Below, piece by piece: positions 24,584-42,653 of a stretch of 64,000 bases of DNA (the first letter of the stretch is position 1; every line of letters starts with the position of its first letter). The position numbers and the translations under genes are program-made. Origin of the DNA: Salpingoeca rosetta (taxonomy: Eukaryota > Protista > Choanoflagellata); the NCBI GenBank assembly GCA_033442325.1, contig JAWQFM010000017.1:597391-661390 (forward strand), written 5' to 3'. The notes below the pieces were generated by a model, which saw only the letters and a program-made list of their open reading frames with translations, searched no databases and was not told the DNA's origin.

Positions 24584-24874
24584 CAGAGGACTAGAGGACC
24601 AAATACCTAAATACATCGTTTTCAAAGGGGTTGCAGGAAGAGGAAGCCCACCCTTGTGGTTTCGAGGAATTGCACAAATTAAACAAGTGCGTGTTTTGGT
24701 TTGCTTTTGGTATCGCAAACACAAACCCACACACACACACACAGACACACAAACACAGGACGTCTGTCCTGTCCGCACTCACCTTCACGCGCTCCTCGCA
24801 CATGCACACTGAACCAGCATTCTTGAGGACAGCAAAGCAAGCAAACGGCAACCCAAGCAAGGCCAGCACCCATC

Positions 24875-27800
24875 ATGCCACGGTACTGCGTGTTCATCTC
24901 GCGTCGGTCTGGCGAGGCCCTGGACGAGAGCATGGCACTGAAGGCTGCACTGCAGCGCAGAGGCGTGTCTACACTTTTGCGGACGAATGAACAGGAAGGT
25001 GGTCTTGGTGACACGGGTGTCCCCGAGGCCGTGATTGAAGCGATTGCCGAGTGCGAGATGGTGGTGATCATGGGCACGCGCAAGTACGGTGAGAAGACAG
25101 GCAGCAAGTTCAGCTCGCGCGGAGAACTCGAGCTCATCATGGATGAGAACAAGCCGCTATTTGTGGTGAAGATGTGTGACCGGTTCGAGCACGCCAAGAC
25201 ACGTTTCTTGCTTCCGCCCATCATCGCTCACCATCCATGGCAGCCGCAAGGTGCCGAGCGTACTCAGCCACCAGCTGAGCTCGTGGACGCCATCATCGCC
25301 AAGCTAGTTGGTGCTATTGTTGTCAACTTGAACGATGCTGATAGCAAGCCAGCGCACCCAGGTGACATGCCGACACAGCTTGCCCAACTGGATGATACCC
25401 AGCATGGTGATCTCGTCAACACACTGTACCACCGCGTTGCAGCCATTGACAAGGAGCGCGCCCACAAGATCACAGCTATGCTGCTTGAATCCGAGCCCGA
25501 ACTCGTCACGAGCCTGCTTGACAATGATGCCATCTTGCACGAGCAGGTCGTCCTCGCTCAGGAGGTCCTCTCCGGCAACGCCAAGGTGCCCAACCGTCCG
25601 CAAGTCAACCCTGGCACGTCCCTGTACGTCGGCGACCTCTCGCCCCAGGTGAACGAGACGGAGCTGTTCAACCTCTTCTCCTCCATTGGCAGCGTCATGT
25701 CCGTGCGCGTGTGCCGCGACCAGATCACGCACGGCTCCCTCGGCTATGGCTACGTCAACTTCAACAAGGCCGAGGACGCCGAGGCCGCCATGGGCCAGCT
25801 CAACTTCCACGACTTGCACGGCCGCCACATCCGCATCATGAAGGTCGAGCGCGACCCCAAGAAGCGCCGCTCTGACCCCCGCAACATTGTCGTTACCGGC
25901 CTGCCCGCGGACACCACCAGCGTCCACCTGCGCGACACCTTTGAGCAGTTTGGCAAGATCCTCTCCTGCAAGGCCGTCCTGGACCACAGCGGCCGCTGCC
26001 GCGGCTTTGGCTTTGTGCACTTTGAGGACCCCAAGGTCGCCGAGCGCGCCATTGCCGAGGCCAACGGCAAGGACGCCGGCGGCGACCGCAAGCTGCGCGT
26101 CGCCCCCTTCAAGCCCCGCAAGCAGCGCGAGCAGGAGCAGGAGGAGCGCACCAAGAACTTCACCAACGTCTACGTCAAGTCCCTGCGCCGCGACGCCGAC
26201 GAGGAGGAGCTGGGCAAGCTCTTTGAGCCCTACGGTGACATCACCTCCAAGGCCCTGCGCACCTACAAGCTCAAGGACACGGAGCGCCCCTACGGCTTTG
26301 TCAACTTTGCCGACACCGAGGCCGCCCAGAAGTGCGTCGAGGAGGGCGAGATGCACCAGCGCGACATCTTCTACGTCGACGGCATGGCCTTTGAGGAGGG
26401 CAAGAAGGTCGAGGACTTTGTCAAGACGGTTGAGGAGTGCGCCGGCAGCGAGGTCGAGCGCCACCACCTGCAGGTCGCCGACGGCAAGCTCTCTGGCTTT
26501 ATCCTCTTCAAGGAGCACGGCGAGGAGACGGTCGACAAGGCCATGACGGGCCTTCCTGAGAAGATGGAGGCTGCAACCGACCACATCTCCAAGGCCAAGC
26601 TGTACGTGCAGCGCGCCCAGACGAAGCAGGAGCGCATCCGTCGCCTTCGCCGCAGGCTGCAGGAGCGTCGTCGCGAGCTCCGCCAGCGCGGTGGCAACCT
26701 CTTTGTCAAGAACTTCAACGAGAACGTGACGGAGGAGGACCTGCGCAAGTTCTTTGAGGAGTGCGGCCACGTCATCGACGTCAAGGTGATGCGCGATATG
26801 GAGGGCGTCTCGCGCTGCTTTGGCTTTGTCATCTTTGCCACGCGCGAGGAGGCCGAGTCTGCCATTGCCAAGAAGAACCGCCAGACACTGCAGGACCGCC
26901 CCATCTACGTTGCCTTCCACCTCACACGCCAGGAGCGCTGCAAGCAGCAGCCACAGCACCCACAGCAGGGCGTGTACATGTACCCGCAGTGCCCCCGCAT
27001 GCCCATGGGCGCGTTTGGCCCCGGCTACTACAACCCGCAGATGATGATGGTCAACCCGCAGATGCCGCGCGCCATGAACTTTCCCGCGCAGGCCGGCAAC
27101 CGCGGCGGACCCGTTGGCGGGCCAACCCGCTACATGCAGCAGCAGAACAGGACCATGCCGCCCCAGGCGCAGCAGCAGATGGCGCGCAACCCACAGCAGT
27201 TCCGCCAGCGGTTTGCCGGGCAGCAGCAGATGCCGCCACAGCAGCAGATGCAGCAGATGCAACAAGAGGCGCCCCAGGGCCAGCAGGCCCAGCAGCAGAT
27301 GCAGCTGCCACAGGACGTGACGTCGCAGCTTGCGCACATGGACGAGGAGCAGCGCCGCCGGTACCTCGGCGACATGCTGTACCACCGCGTCGCAAGCATT
27401 AACAAGGAGCGCGCGCCCAAGATCACGGGCATGCTGCTTGCGTACGACGCCGGCCACCTAATGAACCTGCTGGTCAGCGACGCGGCCCTTCGCGAGCAGG
27501 TCGTGCTTGCGCGGAACATTCTCGCCGGCAACACCGGGGCTCCCGCCAAACAGCAGCAGCGCAACCAGCAGCAGCAGCCCGCACAGCAGCAAGCCCAGCA
27601 GCAGGTGCAGCTGCCACAGGACGTGACGTCGCAGCTTGCGCACATGGACGAGGAGCAGCGCCGCCGGTACCTCGGCGACATGCTGTGCCACCGCGTCGCA
27701 AGCATTGACAAGGAGCGCGCGCCCAAGATCACGGGCATGCTGCTTGCGTACGACGCCGGCCACCTAATGAACCTGCTGGTCAGCGACGCGGCCCTTCGCG

Positions 27801-29398
27801 AGCAGGTCGTGCTTGCGCGGAACATTCTCGCCGGCAACACCGGGGCTCCCGCCAAACAGCAGCAGCGCAACCAGCAGCAGCAGCCCGCACAGCAGCAAGC
27901 CCAGCAGCAGGTGCAGCTGCCACAGGACGTGACGTCGCAGCTTGCGCACATGGACGAGGAGCAGCGCCGCGGGTACCTCGGCGACATGCTGTACCACCGC
28001 GTCGCAGGCATTGACAAGGAGCGCGCGCCCAAGATCACGGGCATGCTGCTTGCGTACGACGCCGGCCACCTGATGAACCTGCTGGCCAGCGACGCGGCCC
28101 TTCGCGAGCAGGTCGTGCTTGCGCAGAACATCCTCGCCGGCAACACCGGGGCTCCCGCCAAACAGCAGCAGAAGGAGGGCGGGTCAGCATATCTGGCTCA
28201 TTTGGATGAGCAGCAACGTAACATCCTCGTGAACAAACTCTCCATCCGTGTTGCAGCTATCAGCAAGGAGCGAGCACCGAAAATTACAGCCATGCTGCTC
28301 GCTTCCAAGCCTCACCACCTTGTGAGCCTACTTGAGAACGATGTCATCCTTCGTGAGCAAGTTGCGCTTGCCCGTAATATTCTGTCCGACAAGCCTTCAG
28401 CCTTGACTGCTGCTGCGGTCATAGTGGGTGATTCAAGGGATGATGATGATGATGACGATGATGATGATGATGATGATGATAACACCGCCAGGGTGTCAGC
28501 GCAAGATCCGCCAACAGCCGCCGTCGCAATGGGCACCAACAAGTTGGAGATTCAAGCCAGCCATGTGGAACCCTTCAAGTCCAAGACGGAGTTGCAGTCT
28601 GCCTTCCAGTCCCTGACGAAGAAGTTTGTGGACACCCACGCCGATGTTCGTGTGCAACAAGCTGACTCCACCTCCCCGCTCTTTGCTGCCATGGAGTTTG
28701 AGGACGTGGGCAAGCAACCAAACACCCTTCCCATGTGAGTAAACCCTGGATGTACTGGATGCATGTGTGGCTGTGTTCGTGTTAGTGTGCGTGTATGTAT
28801 TAGTGTGCGTTTGTGTTCGTGTGCGTGCGTGTGTCTGCTTGTGTCTGCGTGTGTGTGTGTGTGTCTGCGTGCATGTATTCATGTGTGTGAGTGTGTATGT
28901 GTGTGTCTGCGTGCATGTATTCATGTGTGTGCGTGTGCCTCGTTCGTTTGCTCTCGTGCTTTGCTGACGCGTTTGTGTTAATCATCTCTTCTCATACATT
29001 GCCACCATCGCAGCAACCCCAACGTGCTCAAGGCGGCCCGTGCCATGCAGTACAAGAAGCCCTCCAAGATCCAGTCCACCGCCCTTCCCCTTCTCCTGAA
29101 GAACCCGTACGTTGCGCCTCTCCCTGTGCGAACGCTACGCCGTGCCCTGTGATCTCGCTCCGTCCCCCACCACGTCGTATTGCTCGTGCATGTGCTTGTT
29201 GTGTCAAGCGCCACTCACCGTGCTTGCCCGTGGCCATTCAAATGCTACAGGCCAGAGAACCTTGTGTTCCAGTCTCAGCCCGGTACCGGCAAGACTGCCG
29301 CGTTCACCATGAACGTGCTCACGCGTGTGGACCCCACCAAAAAATTCACCCAGGTGCGATGCGCGGAGCCGCTGAATGCCAACACGCTTCCTTCCTTC

Positions 29399-29429
<31 letters not shown>

Positions 29430-30009
29430 CCTTGCTTGCTTCCTTTCTTCCTTCACTTGCTTCCTTCCTTGCTTACCCATAGCATGCCTTTCCCCCTCAC
29501 GCACATATTCATGCATCATTTTCCACCATACACGTATGCACTCACATACATCCGCGCATCATGCTCAACCTTGCATGCAGGCCCTGTACGTGTCATCAAT
29601 GTTGCAATTGTGCTTCCAGACATCGCAGGTGATTGAGGCGCTTGCCCAGTTCACGGGTGTCGAGGTTGGCCTGCTGTTCAGCTCACGCGATGCCGACGCC
29701 ACGCAGCAAGTCGGCAACGTTGCTGACGAGCGCGGGCTTGCCAAGCAGCAGGTGCTGTGCTGCACCATCAAGAAGCTGGTCAGCTCCATGCGCACCAACC
29801 GCAACGTGAGCGCCAAGAACGTGCGCATCCTCGTTGTGGACGAGGCCGATGCCATGCTGGGGAGCGCTGAAAACTTCAAGCTCCTCAAGACCCTCAAGAA
29901 GTACGATTGTGTGTGTGTGTGTGTGCGTGCGTGCGTGCGTGTGTAAACGTGTGCCTGTGTGTGCGCGCGTGTGCGTGTGCGTGCGTGCTTGCGTGTGTAA
30001 ACGTGTGTT

Positions 30010-30040
<31 letters not shown>

Positions 30041-31133
30041 CTCTCTCCCTCTGTGCTGTGTGTAAAGTTGATATTGGCTTGCGTTCCCGTCGGTGTTTCT
30101 GCAGCGCGCACACCTTCGATCTTGCTCTGCTCACCATCAATCCCCCTCCCCCACCCCTCACTCTTCCGTTCCACTGCTTTTGCTGTTGCAGGATGCTGCC
30201 CCCCAACGTGCAGGTGATTATGCTGTCTGCCACCTTCCCCGACCAGGTGATGGGCATCGCGCACGAGGTTGCGCCCAACGCGAACATCATCACCATCCCG
30301 CGGGAGGAGGTGACGGTGAAGGACATCAACCAGCTGTACATCAGCACCCCGAGCTTCGACCGCAAGATTGACGCCCTCCTCGCCATCTACGAGTCCCTCG
30401 ACGTCAAGCAGGTTTGTTCCCACTGCGGTCTTGTGTGTACGTGTGTGTCTGTGTGTATGTGTGTATGTCTGTGTGTGTATGTCTGTGTGCACGTGCGCGT
30501 GATAGCCTGCTTTGTTTGTCCGTTGGTTTGTCCCTTTGTTCGTTTGGTTGGTTCTTTTGTTCGGCAGTTCGTTTCCTGTGTTTCTTGTTTTTTTTTGTCC
30601 TTGCTTTGTTAGGTTCGAATGCTGTGTCATGTTGCATGCCTTGTCACATTCCCTTGTGTGGACTGCTGCGTTGTGTTGTTGCTCCCACTCATGACCACCG
30701 CCATGATCACCATACAACCTCAGACGATTGTGTTTTGCAACACGAAGCGAGCTGTGGAGGAGGTGACGCGCATCATGCGGGAAGAGGGTCACCGCGTGTG
30801 CACCATCAGCAGCAACCTCACCAAGAGCGAGCAGCTTGCACAGCTGGACCGTTTCCTCAGCGGCCTCGACAACCTCCTCGTCGCAACAGATATGCTGTCC
30901 CGTGGCATTGACATCCCCCAGATTTCCGTCGTCATCAACTTTGATGTGCCCATCCGCTTTGGCGACGGCGGTGACTATGCTGGTCCCGGCTACAAGACGT
31001 ACGCCCATCGCATTGGCCGCCTCGGCTGCTTCCGTGGTGGTGGCGCGGCAATCACCTTCGTCCAGACCAGGTATGTGCGTGTGTGTCTGTGTGTGTGTGT
31101 CTGTGTGTGTCTGCGTGTGTGTGTGTGTGTGTC

Positions 31134-31165
<32 letters not shown>

Positions 31166-31454
31166 CTTGTGTTGGTGGTCGAGGCACCTGTCTTCTCTCC
31201 ATCCACCTCTGCGCTTCTGTTATCATGGTTGTTGTTGTTTCCAAAGCCCTGCTGTTTTGTTTTGTCTGCTGTCACCTTCGCGTGCTCATACCCACTTACC
31301 CCATGTCCTCCTCCTCCTCCTCCTCCTCCTCCTCCTCCTCAACAACAACAACAACAACAACAACAACCACAACGACCACCACTACTACGACGACCACCAC
31401 TACAACGACTTAAACAGCTTAAACAACTTAAACAGAACAACAACAACCACAACG

Positions 31455-31488
<34 letters not shown>

Positions 31489-31490
31489 CT

Positions 31491-31524
<34 letters not shown>

Positions 31525-31765
31525 CTTAAACAACAACAACAACTTAAACAACTTAAACAACAACAACAACAACTTAAACAACAACTTAAACAACAACAAC
31601 TTAAACAACAACAACAACAACTTAAACAACAACAACAACAGGAACGAGATGCAGGTGCTTGATGCCATTCGCGAGAACTTTGCGACAGATATCAGGGAGG
31701 TGCAGCCCAAGGAGGCAGACCTGAGAAAACACGTGAGGATCGACATCCACTCGGACGAGCCCTGA
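24875..31765 (+). CDS. Chimeric TIR - MLLE - PABP (4 RRM + linker) - MLLE x4 - DDX19/Dbp5-like DEAD-box helicase
   Basis: Exon 1 (24875-28734) is one open frame: TIR (YCVFIS...[16 protein letters not shown]...GELELI...KPLFVVK), MLLE, PABP RRMs ([36 protein letters not shown]), MLLE repeats, and the DDX19 N-terminus ([18 protein letters not shown]). It splices in phase (AT|gtgagt...cag|C) to exons at ~29014-29106 (KPSKIQ), ~29251-29353 (QSQPGTGKT), 29581-29900 (DEAD), ~30193-30411 (SAT), 30724-~31070 (RGIDI, HRIGR) and ~31642-31765. Confidence 0.85.
27301..28170 (+). repeat. 306-bp coding tandem repeat (~2.8 copies), each encoding one MLLE/PABC domain plus Q-rich linker
   Basis: Near-identical units begin gcagctgccacaggacgtgacg at 27301, 27607 and 27913; the antisense ORFs in the track repeat with a 306-nt period. 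Confidence 0.95.
31341..31640. repeat. (AAC)n / TTAAAC-interrupted microsatellite in the last intron of the chimera
   Basis: AAC runs punctuated by ttaaac, ending at the acceptor ag at ~31641. Confidence 0.9.
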
Positions 31766-33265: not shown

Positions 33266-34876
33266 ATGAGTCGCGTCGTTGACTTTGCAGCGTCCGCCGA
33301 GGGCAGCTCCATGAGTCACAACCCCGATACGGCCCCGCACCAGGTTGCACAGCACAACCAGGCCGACGTGCTTCCAGGCAGCGTTGTCGACGAGCCCGGA
33401 CGCACGAGCGTGTCCACAACGCCGGCTGTCGATGGATTCAACGAAGGAGAGGATCGACCGACGCACGAGACGCCGGCCAAGAAGGACAGCGCCACGGTCG
33501 TCATCACCCAGCCCCCGGGGGCAACCAACGAAGCCCAGGACCTCGCTTCGATCAAGCCCAACAAGACGGACGGCACCGGCGTGGAAGTGGAGCGTGTCCT
33601 TCGCGGCGACTATGTGGAGACCTTTGCCATTGGCGGCGGCACTAAGTGGCTCTATGCCACGATTGAGTTTATCACCGCGCTGTTTGTGGTCTTGAAGGAT
33701 GTGGGTGTTCCCTTTGGTGCGCAGCTGGTGTTGCTCTGGCACAGCATTGTGGAGATGGACATTGTTGGCCCGCTGCTTAAGGCTGCTCTCGGCGCGTCCT
33801 CTCGCATCTCCTACAAGGTCACCGGTGCCTACGAGGCCATGCACCCGCCGCTTGACACGTTTTGGAAGAAAGGCAAGGACACGAGCCTGTGCTCCCTGTG
33901 TGGCTTCAACCCGCCTTGCAAATCGTTGCGCTGGCCAGCGGACGAGGCTCCCGAGCAGTTTCCGTTCCCATGGCGAGTTGGCGGTCTGCGCGGAACGCCG
34001 GAGCACCGCCCCTTCACCGACTTTGAAAACGCCATCATGGCCAACGAGCGCGGCTGGTGGCTCGGGCTGGTGATGCACGGCAACAAGCGCGGCTTCCGGC
34101 TCCGGTTCAAGACAGGCAAGCAGGCCAACGGCGGCACGTCTCTCTTCTGGGTGCGCCGCCAGGGGCGCAGCCCACTTGCCCTGTGCCCAGTCATCGGCTG
34201 CTTGTTCAACGACAACGGCGCCGCCAGCCGCGGACTCAAGGTGTGTGCGGAGGACGGCAAGACCATCATTGGCCGCGTGCTGCCCAGCAAGCAGGGAAGC
34301 GCGTGCGGGTCGCTCTTTGCAAACCGGTTCACGAGGCGTGCGCAGCCCCTGTATGACGTTGTGGATGCCAACGACGCCGTGCTTTTCACCGTGCACATCC
34401 CCGTGGAGGAGTACAAGTTCCTCGGCTGCATCAAGGCCTACGCGCAGATGAAGCACCTGGCCATCGTGCGCGGGCCTCTGCCGCCGGGCGACCGCTTTGG
34501 CGGCGCCACCGACCCCGACTCCGGCTGGATCATCCCCCTGGAGCCCAAGTACGCCGCGTGCATCGAGAGCTGCCTCTCCGCGTGCGATGGCGTGCGCAGG
34601 GTCTTCCAGTGCATCACCTTTGGCGTGTTCGAGCTGATTGAGCGCGTGTTCCGCCTGTTTGAGGCCTTTATTGGACTCATCCGCACCTGCCCGATTGACG
34701 ACTGGACGCAGGTGCCACATCCAGGCCGCAGCGAGCTTCGCATGACAACACCATGCTCCCACGCCATGACTGCGTCCCGCACGCGCTTCCCGAAGAACAT
34801 CACGGAAGAAGAGCACATGCTGCTCATTGCCGCCGGCATTGCTGTTGACATGGAGGACGTGTTCACGTACCTGTGA
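33266..34876 (+). CDS. Phospholipid scramblase-like (tubby/LURP-one barrel) protein; intronless, 536 aa
   Basis: Strong codon bias; Cys-rich loops; IGRV, PLYDVVDANDAVLFTV, and C-terminal RFPKNITEEEHMLLIAAGIAVDM resembling scramblase FP.DL....KA.LLGA.FLID. Confidence 0.7.
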   Translation: MSRVVDFAASAEGSSMSHNPDTAPHQVAQHNQADVLPGSVVDEPGRTSVSTTPAVDGFNEGEDRPTHETPAKKDSATVVITQPPGATNEAQDLASIKPNKTDGTGVEVERVLRGDYVETFAIGGGTKWLYATIEFITALFVVLKDVGVPFGAQLVLLWHSIVEMDIVGPLLKAALGASSRISYKVTGAYEAMHPPLDTFWKKGKDTSLCSLCGFNPPCKSLRWPADEAPEQFPFPWRVGGLRGTPEHRPFTDFENAIMANERGWWLGLVMHGNKRGFRLRFKTGKQANGGTSLFWVRRQGRSPLALCPVIGCLFNDNGAASRGLKVCAEDGKTIIGRVLPSKQGSACGSLFANRFTRRAQPLYDVVDANDAVLFTVHIPVEEYKFLGCIKAYAQMKHLAIVRGPLPPGDRFGGATDPDSGWIIPLEPKYAACIESCLSACDGVRRVFQCITFGVFELIERVFRLFEAFIGLIRTCPIDDWTQVPHPGRSELRMTTPCSHAMTASRTRFPKNITEEEHMLLIAAGIAVDMEDVFTYL

Positions 34877-39321: not shown

Positions 39322-39970
39322 CTCACTCCGTCTCTCACACAGCGCACGCTTGAACAACAACAACAACGCAACAACACTCTGGACGCAGCGTGCTTCTTCT
39401 TTGTGGGTGTTTGAGATGTCGCCAGCAAAACACAAACAACAGCGGAAAGTGGAGCAAGGTGCTGCTTGTGTCGACTATTTACGGGCATCGTTAACAATTA
39501 TCGTCATCAAACCCCAGCCCAAATACCCCGCCAAACACGCCGCTTCCAAAGCAGAGGCCTCGAAGCAGAACAACACTTGAGCACTGCTGGTGCTGTTGTA
39601 TGTGAGCTTGGTGTGCTACCACCTTCTCCTCGTATCCGGCTGAGTGTGCAGCGCACACTTGCAGTCAAAGTGGAACTGGAACGAGCGTGAGGTGAGAACA
39701 GCTGAGCAAGGATTTCGAGGTACTGAGGTAAGGAGGTACGCCACTCACGTCATATATCACCGTCGCATAGTTGTTGGACGAGCCTGTCTCTGGTCCTCAA
39801 CACAGCCTACACCGTCAAGTCAGCCTCTGCGCCAACCCAAGAGCCGGCTACATGTCATCCATACACTCACATGTACGCACGCACACACACACATGCTCGC
39901 ACACACTCACATGAACGCATACACACTCACATGCACACAACAACAACAACACGCTGCAGGACGCCCAACC

Positions 39971-41410
39971 ATGAATCAGCACACCACAACGGAGGTGCTG
40001 GACTTTGTGCTCAACAAAGGCGTCAAGGGCCTCGGTTTCACCGTCGTGGATGACGAGGATGGCGTGTATGTGCACTCCGTGTCCGCGGAAGGTGCCGCAG
40101 CCGGGTACCTGATGCAGGGCGACAAGATCCTCTTTGTCAAGAACATCGACGTGCGCGACTGGCAGCTGTTTGAGATTGTCAACATGCTCAAGAGCACGCG
40201 GCATGGCAAGGTGCCCATCACCGTCGCCCGGGAGGTGTCCGACGCGACCACCATCTCCACAGACGAGTACCTGCGCGCGCAGTGGATGGAGGACGAGGCG
40301 GGCCAGGCCCTGGGCATTGGCGAGACGTTCGTCGTCGACTTCACCGACATCAAGGAGCAAGAGCTCGGCATCATGCTCACAGGTGGAGCCTCGCCCTCGG
40401 ACGCGTCCCTCCCCATCACGGTGGAGAGCATCCTCCCGGGCTCCCTGGCGGCCACTGACGGCCGGCTCGTGCCATCGGACGTCATCATCGCCATCAACGG
40501 TCGCCGCGTCGCCGGGGCGAGTCTCCAGGGCGCTCTGCGGCTGCTGAGCGCGGCGGAGCAGTCTGGCTCCGTTGTGTTTGTGGCGCAGCACGCGCGGTCG
40601 TATGAGGCGCAGGCCATCCAGAACCAGCCCATCACCTCCGTCGACACGCGCCTGATGAAGTCGCACACGCTCGAGCGCGTCATCCTGGTGCAGAAGCGCA
40701 AGCGGACGGCGCCCGTGGTGCGTTGCCGCCTGTCCAACACCACGTGCATCACGGGCCTGCGCACGGCTGTTGTGGTCGAGCACGTGGAGGCCGGCTGCGA
40801 CCTGTGGCGTGCGGGCCTGCGTCCGGAGCAGGTGATCCTCGTCCTCAACGACTTTGTGCTGACGACGGTGACGCCGAAGCTGCTGGTGCAGGTGCAGCGC
40901 GACCTCAACACCCTGCAACGCCTCGACATCATGTCCATCGTGCCCGCCCCCTCCAACCGCAACCAGCAGCCGTCGGCGGCGGTGCGCGCCGTCCTGCGCC
41001 GCTATCGTGGCCGTTTTGGCATCACGCTCACGGACAGGCTGCCGCAGCTGCCGTACATTGAAGGCCTCTTTGTCGAGAGCAAAGGGCGGGAGTTGTTTGG
41101 CGACAACGCGGGCCGCGTGTCGAGCGGCATGTGCGTGCAGTCCATCAACCAGCGTACGTGTCACGGCCGAACGTTTGCGGAGTGCCTTGACCTGATGCAG
41201 CAGGCCAAGGGGTCGGTGGTGCTGCACCTGCTGCCCGTGGTGTACCCGCGCATGGACGACGAGAAACGCGAGCTGGCGAGATTGGCGGCGGCGGCAGAGG
41301 CAAAGGCGCAGCAGGGTGCAACAAACAACACAACCGCAGCACAGCACAGCAGCAGCACCGCCCCTCACGCGACACCTACAACGGCTGCATCACAACCACA
41401 GTCATATCAC

Positions 41411-41442
<32 letters not shown>

Positions 41443-42653
41443 GCAACAGCAACAGCAGCAGTCGCCAGCGTCATCGTCATCGTCGTCGCAGCTGTCACTG
41501 GCAGAGGGTGCAGCTCTGAGTGTGGCTGACACCAAGCAGCCCACACATGCAGAGAGCGGGGCGCCAACAAACGCCACGACGCGGGGTGAAAGAGGCAGCA
41601 GCGTCGTTTACGACAACCTTCGTGAGCCATCGCAAGGTGAAAAAGGAGAAGGAGAGCAGGTAGGGCGGAATACCAATGCGAGGGCAAACGACGTCATCTA
41701 TGACAACATGAAGGCGTTGAAGGGCGACAGCGAGGATGCAGAAGAGAGGCGACAGCACGATGTTGCAAGTCATGATGGTGAGGTTGAGGTTGAGGGTGAC
41801 GGTGACGGTGACGGTGGCGGTGATGATGGTGGTGATGATGATGATGATGATGAGGTTGAGGTGAAGGGTTATGGTGATGAAGATGGAGACGGTGATGACG
41901 GCGACGATGAGGCGACGAGCGTGTCGCGAACAGAAGGGCGCGGGTCGTTGAGCATTGGGCGGCAGTCTGATTCGGACATGTCCTCCCTGTACTACCCCTC
42001 CACAACGTCGCACGTGTCGACGACAGACGCTTCCACGCGCCGCACGTCCTCGCTGCTGCCGCGTGGGGAGTTGAAGGAGGTGGTCATTGAGCGGGACGAC
42101 ATGGGTCTTGGGTTTGGCATCTGCAGCGGGCAGGGCTACAAGGGCATCTTTGTCGGCAACGTTGCTCCCGAGGTTTGTGTGTGTGTGTGTGTGTGTATGC
42201 GAGTGTGTTGTGTGTCGAGGGTGTGTTGTGTGTTGTGTGTACGTGTTTGTACGAGGGTTGTATGTGTATGTGTATGTGTGTGCATATGTGTATTGTTTGC
42301 ATTGCAAGCCTGCTCTGTTCTTGTCTCACACACTCTCCCTGGTTCACTGTCATCATCACTGTCATCATCACCACCACCCTACTCCCCCGCTCTCGCTGCA
42401 CAGGGCCCGGCCGCTGGGCAGCTTGAGATTGGCGACCACCTTGTGTGGGCGAGCGGGCACGCGCTGGTGTCGATACCGTATGACGCCGCCGTGTCGCTGC
42501 TCACGGCCCCGCGTCCCGCCCTCCGCCTCATTGTCGCCCGGCGCATGCACGGCTCATTCAACTACCTCGCCACAACGTAAGTTGTGTGTACGTGGTGTAC
42601 GTGTACGTGTGCTTGCGTGCGTGTGTGTGTACGTGTGTGCTTGTATGTGTACG

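Follow-up and report, generated by a model that had tools for sequence, protein, structure and literature searches.

NAD+-consuming TIR and DUF4062/NIR domains are found as immune effectors from bacteria to humans. Two 2026 preprints show that DUF4062 domains, which one of them renames NIR, hydrolyse NAD+ in a glutamate-dependent manner (NADase activity), both in human TEP1, a component of a ribonucleoprotein (RNP), and in anti-phage systems of bacteria, and they report the domain from 96% of the choanoflagellate data sets (bioRxiv 10.64898/2026.05.01.722283; 10.64898/2026.09.04.749371). Intracellular TIR proteins of choanoflagellates combine with Arm, Ank and SH2 domains (Richter et al. 2018, PMC6040629). 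A TIR of the choanoflagellate Salpingoeca rosetta produces cyclic ADP-ribose (cADPR). Here we describe an S. rosetta gene in which a TIR-like domain is joined to several MLLE domains and to copies of the poly(A)-binding protein (PABP) and of the mRNA-export helicase Dbp5/DDX19. The gene lies at 24875-31765 on the plus strand of a 64,000-nt stretch (the window; contig JAWQFM010000017.1 of assembly GCA_033442325.1, positions 597,391 to 661,390), to which all coordinates refer unless another contig is named. This chimeric gene is real, intact, transcribed and spliced. It is also species-specific, its architecture being found nowhere else in the databases searched.

Several described systems resemble the encoded protein in part. 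With the DUF4062/NIR NADases (bacterial Swarozyc, Avs2, Vulcan and Vesta; human TEP1 and NWD1/2) it shares a predicted N-terminal TIR-like fold of the flavodoxin type, a conserved glutamate about 85-105 residues in, and a long multidomain layout. TEP1 offers a further parallel, being a NADase of the same kind joined to an RNA-binding module within an RNP. The eukaryotic proteins of this type are however mostly NLR-like (NACHT/STAND plus repeats), whereas the present protein lacks a STAND module and has a whole PABP and a whole Dbp5 as partners. Like SARM1 and the TIR NADases that carry ARM or other repeat sensors, the protein would combine an enzyme with a sensing or regulatory arm and, by analogy, be activated by oligomerisation; unlike SARM1, whose order is ARM-SAM-TIR, it has the reverse order, no SAM, and an arm composed of RNA-binding and PAM2-binding modules. 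Plant NLR receptors with integrated domains (NLR-ID; RRS1-WRKY, RGA5-HMA) also carry a copy of a commonly targeted host protein within an immune-type signalling protein while the genuine gene persists elsewhere. A duplicated host protein with its genuine gene kept is likewise found here, for PABP on contig C6 and for Dbp5 on contig C1 of the same genome (synonymous divergence, dS, 0.06 and 0.09). In contrast to the plant receptors, the S. rosetta protein has no NB-ARC/LRR, no paired helper receptor was seen, whole multi-domain proteins rather than one small domain are integrated, and no effector is known.

The coding sequence (5067 nt, 1688 codons, one terminal stop) is spread over seven exons separated by six in-phase GT..AG introns and encodes, in order, the TIR-like domain, an old MLLE, a PABP copy with four RRMs and three successive MLLEs, a second old MLLE and the Dbp5/DDX19 copy. 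In the open reading frame (ORF) scan the first exon appeared as a stop-free frame of 1287 codons at 24875-28738 (+). A donor, GTGAGT, at 28735 overlaps the in-frame stop and bounds exon 1 at 24875-28734 (1286 codons plus 2 nt); the joint 28734>29014 (GT..AG) is present in RNA reads and joins this exon in phase, at the acceptor 29013/29014, to the Q motif of the helicase. Pfam searches of the 1287-residue exon product gave five MLLE stretches (E = 3e-76) and four RRM_1 stretches (E = 5e-72), in agreement with the initial annotation of a single uninterrupted exon running from TIR through one MLLE, four RRMs and four more MLLEs to the DDX19 extension. No Pfam match to NB-ARC, NACHT, LRR, WD40 or TPR was obtained in this exon or in the helicase exons. 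A minimum 5' untranslated region (UTR), 24732-24874 (+), is given by an assembled contig of RNA run X5 (record 9, 915 nt, 0 mismatches) that begins 68 nt upstream of 24800 and ends at 25646.

The N-terminal domain (residues 1-150, 24875-25324) scored weakly against both Pfam TIR_2 (E 0.005-0.007, 17-18 bits, cut-off 28) and Pfam DUF4062 (PF13271, clan STIR; E 0.003-0.004, 18 bits, cut-off 24.7). Its paralogs scored more clearly: 12 of the 15 that were aligned match both families, with best E-values of 1.4e-8 for DUF4062 and 8e-7 for TIR_2, the closest paralog exceeds the DUF4062 cut-off (25.2 against 24.7 bits), and two paralogs are called DUF4062 proteins in UniProt. An AlphaFold (AF2) model built on the paralog alignment (pLDDT 83.6, pTM 0.82) contains five beta-alpha units, and the top Foldseek matches of this model in the PDB are the TIR domains of RPV1, RUN1, IL-1RAcPb, SARM1 and RPS4/RRS1 (probability 1.00, TM 0.57-0.65), followed by DNPH1 and nucleoside deoxyribosyltransferases. 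The model thus predicts a TIR/flavodoxin-like fold, with a five-stranded parallel sheet and alternating helices. At the level of sequence, a profile of the paralog alignment found weak TIR matches only in the PDB (Roq1, E 0.011; SARM1, E 0.3), matches to CRASP-2 being spurious, and did not place the catalytic residue. On the strength of the paralog Pfam matches, the model and the Foldseek TIR matches, the domain is better named TIR-like, of the DUF4062/NIR type; the TIR domain first annotated here therefore stands as to its fold and not as a classical TIR. The putative catalytic residue is Glu84 (25124-25126), the glutamate of GELEL, which lies in a predicted helix (residues 81-90) directly before the invariant Leu85. 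Position 84 is Glu in 13 of the 15 aligned paralogs and Gln in the other two, and its placement agrees with the Glu-then-hydrophobic pattern of TIR NADases. It is also comparable to Glu97-108 of bacterial NIRs, by match of position and not by residue-level superposition. Glu84 is thus a candidate for the catalytic glutamate, which is expected at the start of helix alpha-C.

The genome that we searched (55.4 Mb, 68 contigs) encodes at least 35 paralogous TIR-like domains, from the nearest of which the present one differs with dS 0.6-0.8 and a ratio of nonsynonymous to synonymous divergence (dN/dS) of 0.25-0.31. Other family members with different captured domains, anticipated by the initial annotation, do exist: most paralogs, including the nearest, join the TIR-like domain to ARM repeats, and others carry PDZ (plus Smr), LRR-Roc-COR, a SecA-DEAD-like region or a large Receptor-L repeat protein. 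Elsewhere in the genome, one locus encodes PTSG_10764, with 523 of 523 residues identical to the published S. rosetta protein. Relatives of the domain, 504 representatives at E<=1e-3, come from further choanoflagellates (Microstomoeca, Craspedida sp.) and from metagenomes, and none of the best 150 of these contains an MLLE, RRM or helicase. Among 5.8 billion proteins (lengths 135-2252 residues) none is more than 67% identical to this TIR-like domain or has the architecture of the chimera, and no look-alike joining a TIR-like domain to MLLE, RRM or DEAD domains was found in that set; the claim that no such protein had been described thus holds in the databases searched. Since no database protein exceeds 67% identity, the public S. 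rosetta protein set apparently lacks the gene. Its sequence is present in RNA and DNA runs from 2011 onward. One paralog deserves mention: on contig C10 (905000-914999, minus strand 2660-9760) an open frame of 2367 codons begins with a TIR-like domain and also encodes a probable transmembrane stretch and a very large array of Receptor-L/LRR-like repeats, resembling a receptor with the TIR-like domain on the side opposite to the usual one.

Separate canonical genes for both captured modules were identified, as the initial annotation had suggested looking for. The PABP gene on contig C6 encodes a protein identical to the published S. rosetta PABP over 765 of 765 residues, and the Dbp5 gene lies on contig C1. 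Their presence rules out that the chimera is a housekeeping fusion representing the sole PABP or Dbp5 copy. The PABP module extends from the first residue of RRM1 to the end of MLLE2 (25617-27532; dS 0.06, dN 0.022, dN/dS 0.37 against the C6 gene), and reads of the canonical gene are clipped at 25617. It retains the domain order of PABPC, with RRM1 at 25619-25855, RRM2 at 25880-26116, RRM3 at 26162-26350, RRM4 at 26693-26926, a linker and a C-terminal MLLE, and differs from the canonical protein by the lack of the N-terminal Q/A-rich region, by a rewritten RNP2 and by the multiplication of the MLLE. Divergence varies along the module: the first 100 codons have a dS of 0.12, the next 200 codons (600 nt) show only 0-2 differences, and dS rises to 0.09-0.17 at the 3' end. 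This unevenness, with a central block almost identical to the canonical gene, suggests gene conversion between the module and its parent. The aromatic residues of RNP1 and RNP2 are not all preserved in RRM1-2, a fusion-specific patch in RRM2 (25873-25896, 10 substitutions in 24 nt) having changed the RNP2 sequence NIFIS, present in both canonical copies, into NIVVT. This change may weaken binding to RNA or poly(A). A third donor for the patch was sought and no source sequence was found elsewhere in the genome.

Two further features of the PABP loci were observed. An insert of about 110 residues between RRM3 and RRM4 (26350-26693), shared by the canonical and fused PABP and unnamed by Pfam, may be a degenerate extra RRM. 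The second PABP copy on C6 (257000-266999, minus strand about 5988-7920), about 99% like the canonical one, changes frame after HLTRQE past RRM4; recent decay into a pseudogene, a missed short intron or an indel of the assembly could each account for this.

By age, two classes of MLLE can be told apart. MLLE2 (27305-27532), MLLE3 (27611-27838) and MLLE4 (27917-28144) are recent and derive from a 306-bp unit, of which Tandem Repeats Finder detects 2.9 copies at 27281-28171 (98% matches); 4 sites distinguish unit 1 from unit 2, and the other unit comparisons give 32-34 differences. MLLE1 (25364-25582; Pfam MLLE) and MLLE5 (28169-28396) are old. Their residue identities to the canonical MLLE and to each other are 53-57% (54% for MLLE1 and 53% for MLLE5 against the canonical domain), with dS of about 0.6 for MLLE1 and saturated, above 1.4, for MLLE5, the oldest copy. 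Values of dN/dS of 0.16-0.48 (0.16 for MLLE5 against the canonical domain) indicate long-term purifying selection on the TIR-like domain, MLLE1 and MLLE5. Because these three parts are old and constrained, a TIR-like/MLLE gene under selection probably predates by far the installation, or refreshment, of the PABP and helicase sequences now in place. Apart from the loci above, the genome has one MLLE locus, on contig C14 (973000-982999, minus strand 5641-7767), which encodes TPR and MLLE domains followed by a very long Gly/Glu/Asn-rich repeat.

The PABP and Dbp5 modules meet at a (GAT)14 poly-Asp linker (28439-28480, from the tandem-repeat search). The fusion has no counterpart of the ~50 codons that open the C1 gene. 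The Dbp5/DDX19 N-terminal extension follows at 28492-28734, with DNA homology to C1 from 28561. Between 28561 and 31165 the two loci align over 2652 nt with 90.5% identity, introns included (exons 95.5%, introns 92.8%; dS 0.09, dN/dS 0.37), and the intron positions are the same. Gene model, RNA reads and comparison with C1 agree on exon 2 (29014-29106, Q motif) and exon 3 (29251-29353, motif I SQPGTGKT); gene model and C1 comparison define exon 4 (29581-29900, with motif Ia, CTIKK in place of TPGR, and DEAD) and exon 5 (30192-30411, SAT). Exon 6 (30724-31070) encodes RecA2 with motifs IV and V and HRIGRLGC in place of HRIGRTGR, and exon 7 (31642-31765, stop codon 31763-31765) a C-terminal tail that has diverged to 78% nucleotide identity with the C1 copy. 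The RecA2 exon matches DDX25 (1.8e-22), DDX19B (2.6e-20) and Dbp5 (5.6e-20) in the PDB, and the subfamily insertion before motif VI is aligned; the middle RecA1 exon gave no PDB match at E 1e-3. By sequence the RecA2 exon clearly belongs to the DDX19/DDX25/Dbp5 subfamily.

The in-phase splice into a full DEAD-box core described in the initial annotation is correct as to splicing and phase and overstated as to the core. Motifs Q, I, II (DEAD), III (SAT) and V are present, whereas Ib (CTIKK) is not TPGR-like and VI (HRIGRLGC) lacks the second Arg. Erosion of the helicase as a property of the chimera was considered and mostly rejected: both atypical motifs are identical in the canonical C1 gene, so they are features of S. 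rosetta Dbp5 older than the fusion, and only motif Ia (SPTF to SSML, 5 substitutions in 14 nt at 29595-29608) is fusion-specific. A second, more orthodox Dbp5 was also sought with the RecA2 exon, which beyond C1 retrieved only eIF4A-like and DDX3-like loci. Since no closer Dbp5-like locus was found in the genome, the C1 gene is probably the S. rosetta Dbp5 orthologue. Its atypical Ib and VI (C1:994000-1012000, minus strand), together with a middle RecA1 exon that resembles no solved structure at E 1e-3, are odd for an essential mRNA-export ATPase. A PAM2-like stretch in the N-terminal extension, AMEFED, was ruled out as a PAM2 motif by its spacing and presumably represents the conserved Phe upstream of the Q motif. 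The RRM2 patch (10 of 24 nt) and the motif Ia change (5 of 14 nt) are two dense substitution clusters in otherwise near-identical duplicated sequence, both at RNA-contact motifs, and could reflect multi-nucleotide mutation events or positive selection.

For each captured module the pairwise dN/dS of 0.37 lies below 1 (Fisher test, p 5e-4 and 2e-4). No frameshift has occurred in the 3.3 kb of copied coding sequence and no indel separates the helicase exons from those of C1, whereas the introns contain many indels.

Transcription was followed in two stranded RNA-seq runs of 2026, X21 and X22, both of which contain plus-strand reads on every segment unique to the gene. In X22 the depth was 13-24x over the TIR-like part, 15-21x over the RRM2 patch, 21-25x over MLLE3-4, 20-32x over the MLLE5/poly-Asp/Dbp5 join and 16-44x at window-specific alleles in exons 4-5. 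In X21 the same segments rise from 2-6x at the 5' side to 16-21x at the MLLE5 join, a gradient that we read as 3' bias. The two runs, from samples of one study, differ about 5-fold in depth over 24800-25587 and less than 2-fold over the 3' unique parts, probably owing to the same bias, with an internal start or condition-dependent expression as alternatives. In the RNA runs no reads lie over introns 1 and 4, and the GT..AG joints of introns 1-3 are present in reads that may derive from the near-identical C1 transcript. Far higher depth over 25588-27360 is due to cross-mapping of the abundant canonical PABP mRNA, as shown by the variant table and by reads clipped at 25617 and 25872/25897. The 915-nt contig of X5 (24732-25646) starts in the 5' UTR, takes in the TIR-like domain and MLLE1, and ends within RRM1, exactly where the sequence becomes common to canonical PABP; it is intron-free, and X5 therefore behaves as RNA. 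Other X5 contigs, at 28142-28416 and 28492-28712, show 0 mismatches and similar depth, and X1 also covers 24800-25646 with 0 mismatches. Transcripts across the domain junctions, called for in the initial annotation, were thus recovered for TIR-like/MLLE1/RRM1 and poly-Asp/Dbp5, and in the RNA runs examined neither a read nor a contig covers the gene from end to end.

An assembly artefact was rejected on two grounds: the copies differ by 3-7% in DNA from their parents and hence are no collapsed duplicates of the parental loci, and contigs of different studies cross both junctions without mismatch. The same observations bear on the possibility that the locus does not make one protein, internal promoters or processing yielding separate TIR-like/MLLE, PABP-like and Dbp5-like products, with a mis-joined assembly as the extreme version. 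The want of a spanning molecule and the rise in X21 would suit this explanation. Yet the X22 depth is flat over the unique segments (13-24x, 15-21x, 20-32x), the TIR-like/PABP boundary (24800-25646, X1 and X5) and the poly-Asp/Dbp5 boundary (28492-28712) are both crossed, the copies diverge from their parents and every junction keeps the frame, and we regard separate products as very unlikely.

We tentatively propose, in a reading that we hold with slightly more doubt than conviction, that the gene was made stepwise from an old TIR-like/MLLE core and recent PABP and Dbp5 copies, and that its PABP/MLLE/Dbp5 part is the targeting or sensing arm of a NADase tethered to mRNPs, which may serve as a guard or decoy sensor. 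The TIR-like domain, from the lineage-expanded DUF4062/NIR family, had probably acquired its MLLE modules early. In frame behind this core stand recent copies, made at the DNA level, of the organism's own PABP gene and of its own Dbp5 gene, the latter with its introns, and the MLLE was subsequently tripled. Through the PABP, five-MLLE and Dbp5 arm the TIR-like domain would be brought to poly(A) mRNPs, to PAM2-motif proteins that bind MLLE, or to partners of Dbp5. Clustering of many copies, or disturbance of these contacts, would cause the N-terminal domains to oligomerise and hydrolyse NAD+, a step modelled on TIR and DUF4062 enzymes. Its purpose might be either antiviral guarding, with the arm as bait for factors attacking PABP or Dbp5, or regulation of mRNA metabolism.

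Several observations weigh against this proposal. A protein binding every poly(A) tail risks constant activation unless it is autoinhibited, and both fusion-specific clusters strike RNA-contact motifs (RRM2 RNP2 and helicase Ia), which may mean weakened RNA binding and not tethering. The Pfam scores of the chimeric protein itself lie under both curated cut-offs. Expression is low compared with canonical PABP, no read or contig spans the gene, and the exon 1-exon 2 joints are indistinguishable from those of the C1 paralog. The databases searched contain no orthologue or look-alike to document long-term conservation of the full architecture. Finally, if replacement changes are nearly absent from the canonical lineages, dN/dS in the fusion lineage is about 0.7, which by our own estimate is only marginally below neutrality (one-sided p about 0.04).

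This last point would also fit a neutral young chimera, in which segmental duplications landed PABP and Dbp5 in frame by chance and the gene, poorly transcribed and without selected function, will decay. The youth of the captured modules (dS 0.06 and 0.09), the restriction of the gene to one species, the low expression, a fusion-lineage dN/dS not clearly below 1, the clusters in RNP2 and Ia, and the apparent frameshift of the second C6 copy, by which PABP duplicates decay in this genome, all agree with such an origin. It accounts less well for an intact frame of 1688 codons with six correctly placed introns and no frameshift indel in the copied exons. Moreover, MLLE1, MLLE5 and the TIR-like domain are old yet under purifying selection, which argues for a working TIR-like/MLLE gene well in advance of the recent copies; the MLLEs still score over the MLLE cut-off, and the 0-2 differences in 600 nt of the central PABP block suggest ongoing gene conversion and not decay. 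We judge a neutral chimera rather unlikely, though a serious rival. Another rival is an integrated-decoy receptor in the strict sense of the initial annotation, whose PABP and Dbp5 copies would be baits for viral or bacterial effectors, the action of which frees the NADase. PABP is a frequent target of viral shut-off. The baits copy genuine host genes kept elsewhere, the PABP copy stays nearly identical to its original, and the MLLE bait has been multiplied. The size of the N-terminal family and the shuffling of its partner domains recall immune families; bacteria use DUF4062 and TIR domains as immune effectors, and an S. rosetta TIR makes cADPR. Against it, there is no STAND/NB-ARC/NACHT module, the architecture occurs in one species only, the ~5-fold 5' difference between X21 and X22 is consistent with 3' bias, and we know of no S. 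rosetta pathogen that targets PABP or Dbp5. A strict decoy receptor is in our opinion improbable. Its fully specified form is quite improbable: a TIR-like NADase with a spare PABP, five PAM2-binding MLLEs and a spare Dbp5 as bait, kept PABP-like by conversion and firing when a virus or bacterial effector cleaves, sequesters or clusters the baits, would be an integrated decoy without an NLR core outside plants. The general immune-decoy reading is a permitted hypothesis, compatible with the persistence of the parental genes, the mimicry of the PABP block, the multiplication of the MLLE and the immune-like expansion of the family.

Under the mRNP-tethered NADase that we propose, the sensing arm would be derived from two well-understood proteins with known ligands (poly(A), PAM2 peptides, Gle1/Nup partners), namely PABP and Dbp5, which allows concrete hypotheses to be framed in a genetically tractable choanoflagellate. 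As an instance of gene birth the locus is clear-cut: host genes were captured in layers, the MLLE was amplified in tandem, and conversion with a parent gene probably took place. Apparently missing from the public protein set, the gene would escape proteome-based surveys.

Downstream, a 536-residue ORF without Pfam match (33266-34876, +) and a 978-residue frame with two to three PDZ domains (39644-42580, +) are the neighbours; these neighbouring ORFs gave no informative context and no link to the chimeric gene was seen. The introns of the gene and its flanks are rich in GT/GTGC microsatellites, and most of the last intron is taken up by a (CAA)n-type microsatellite of 300 bp (31340-31640) that yields a long poly-Asn/Gln pseudo-ORF.

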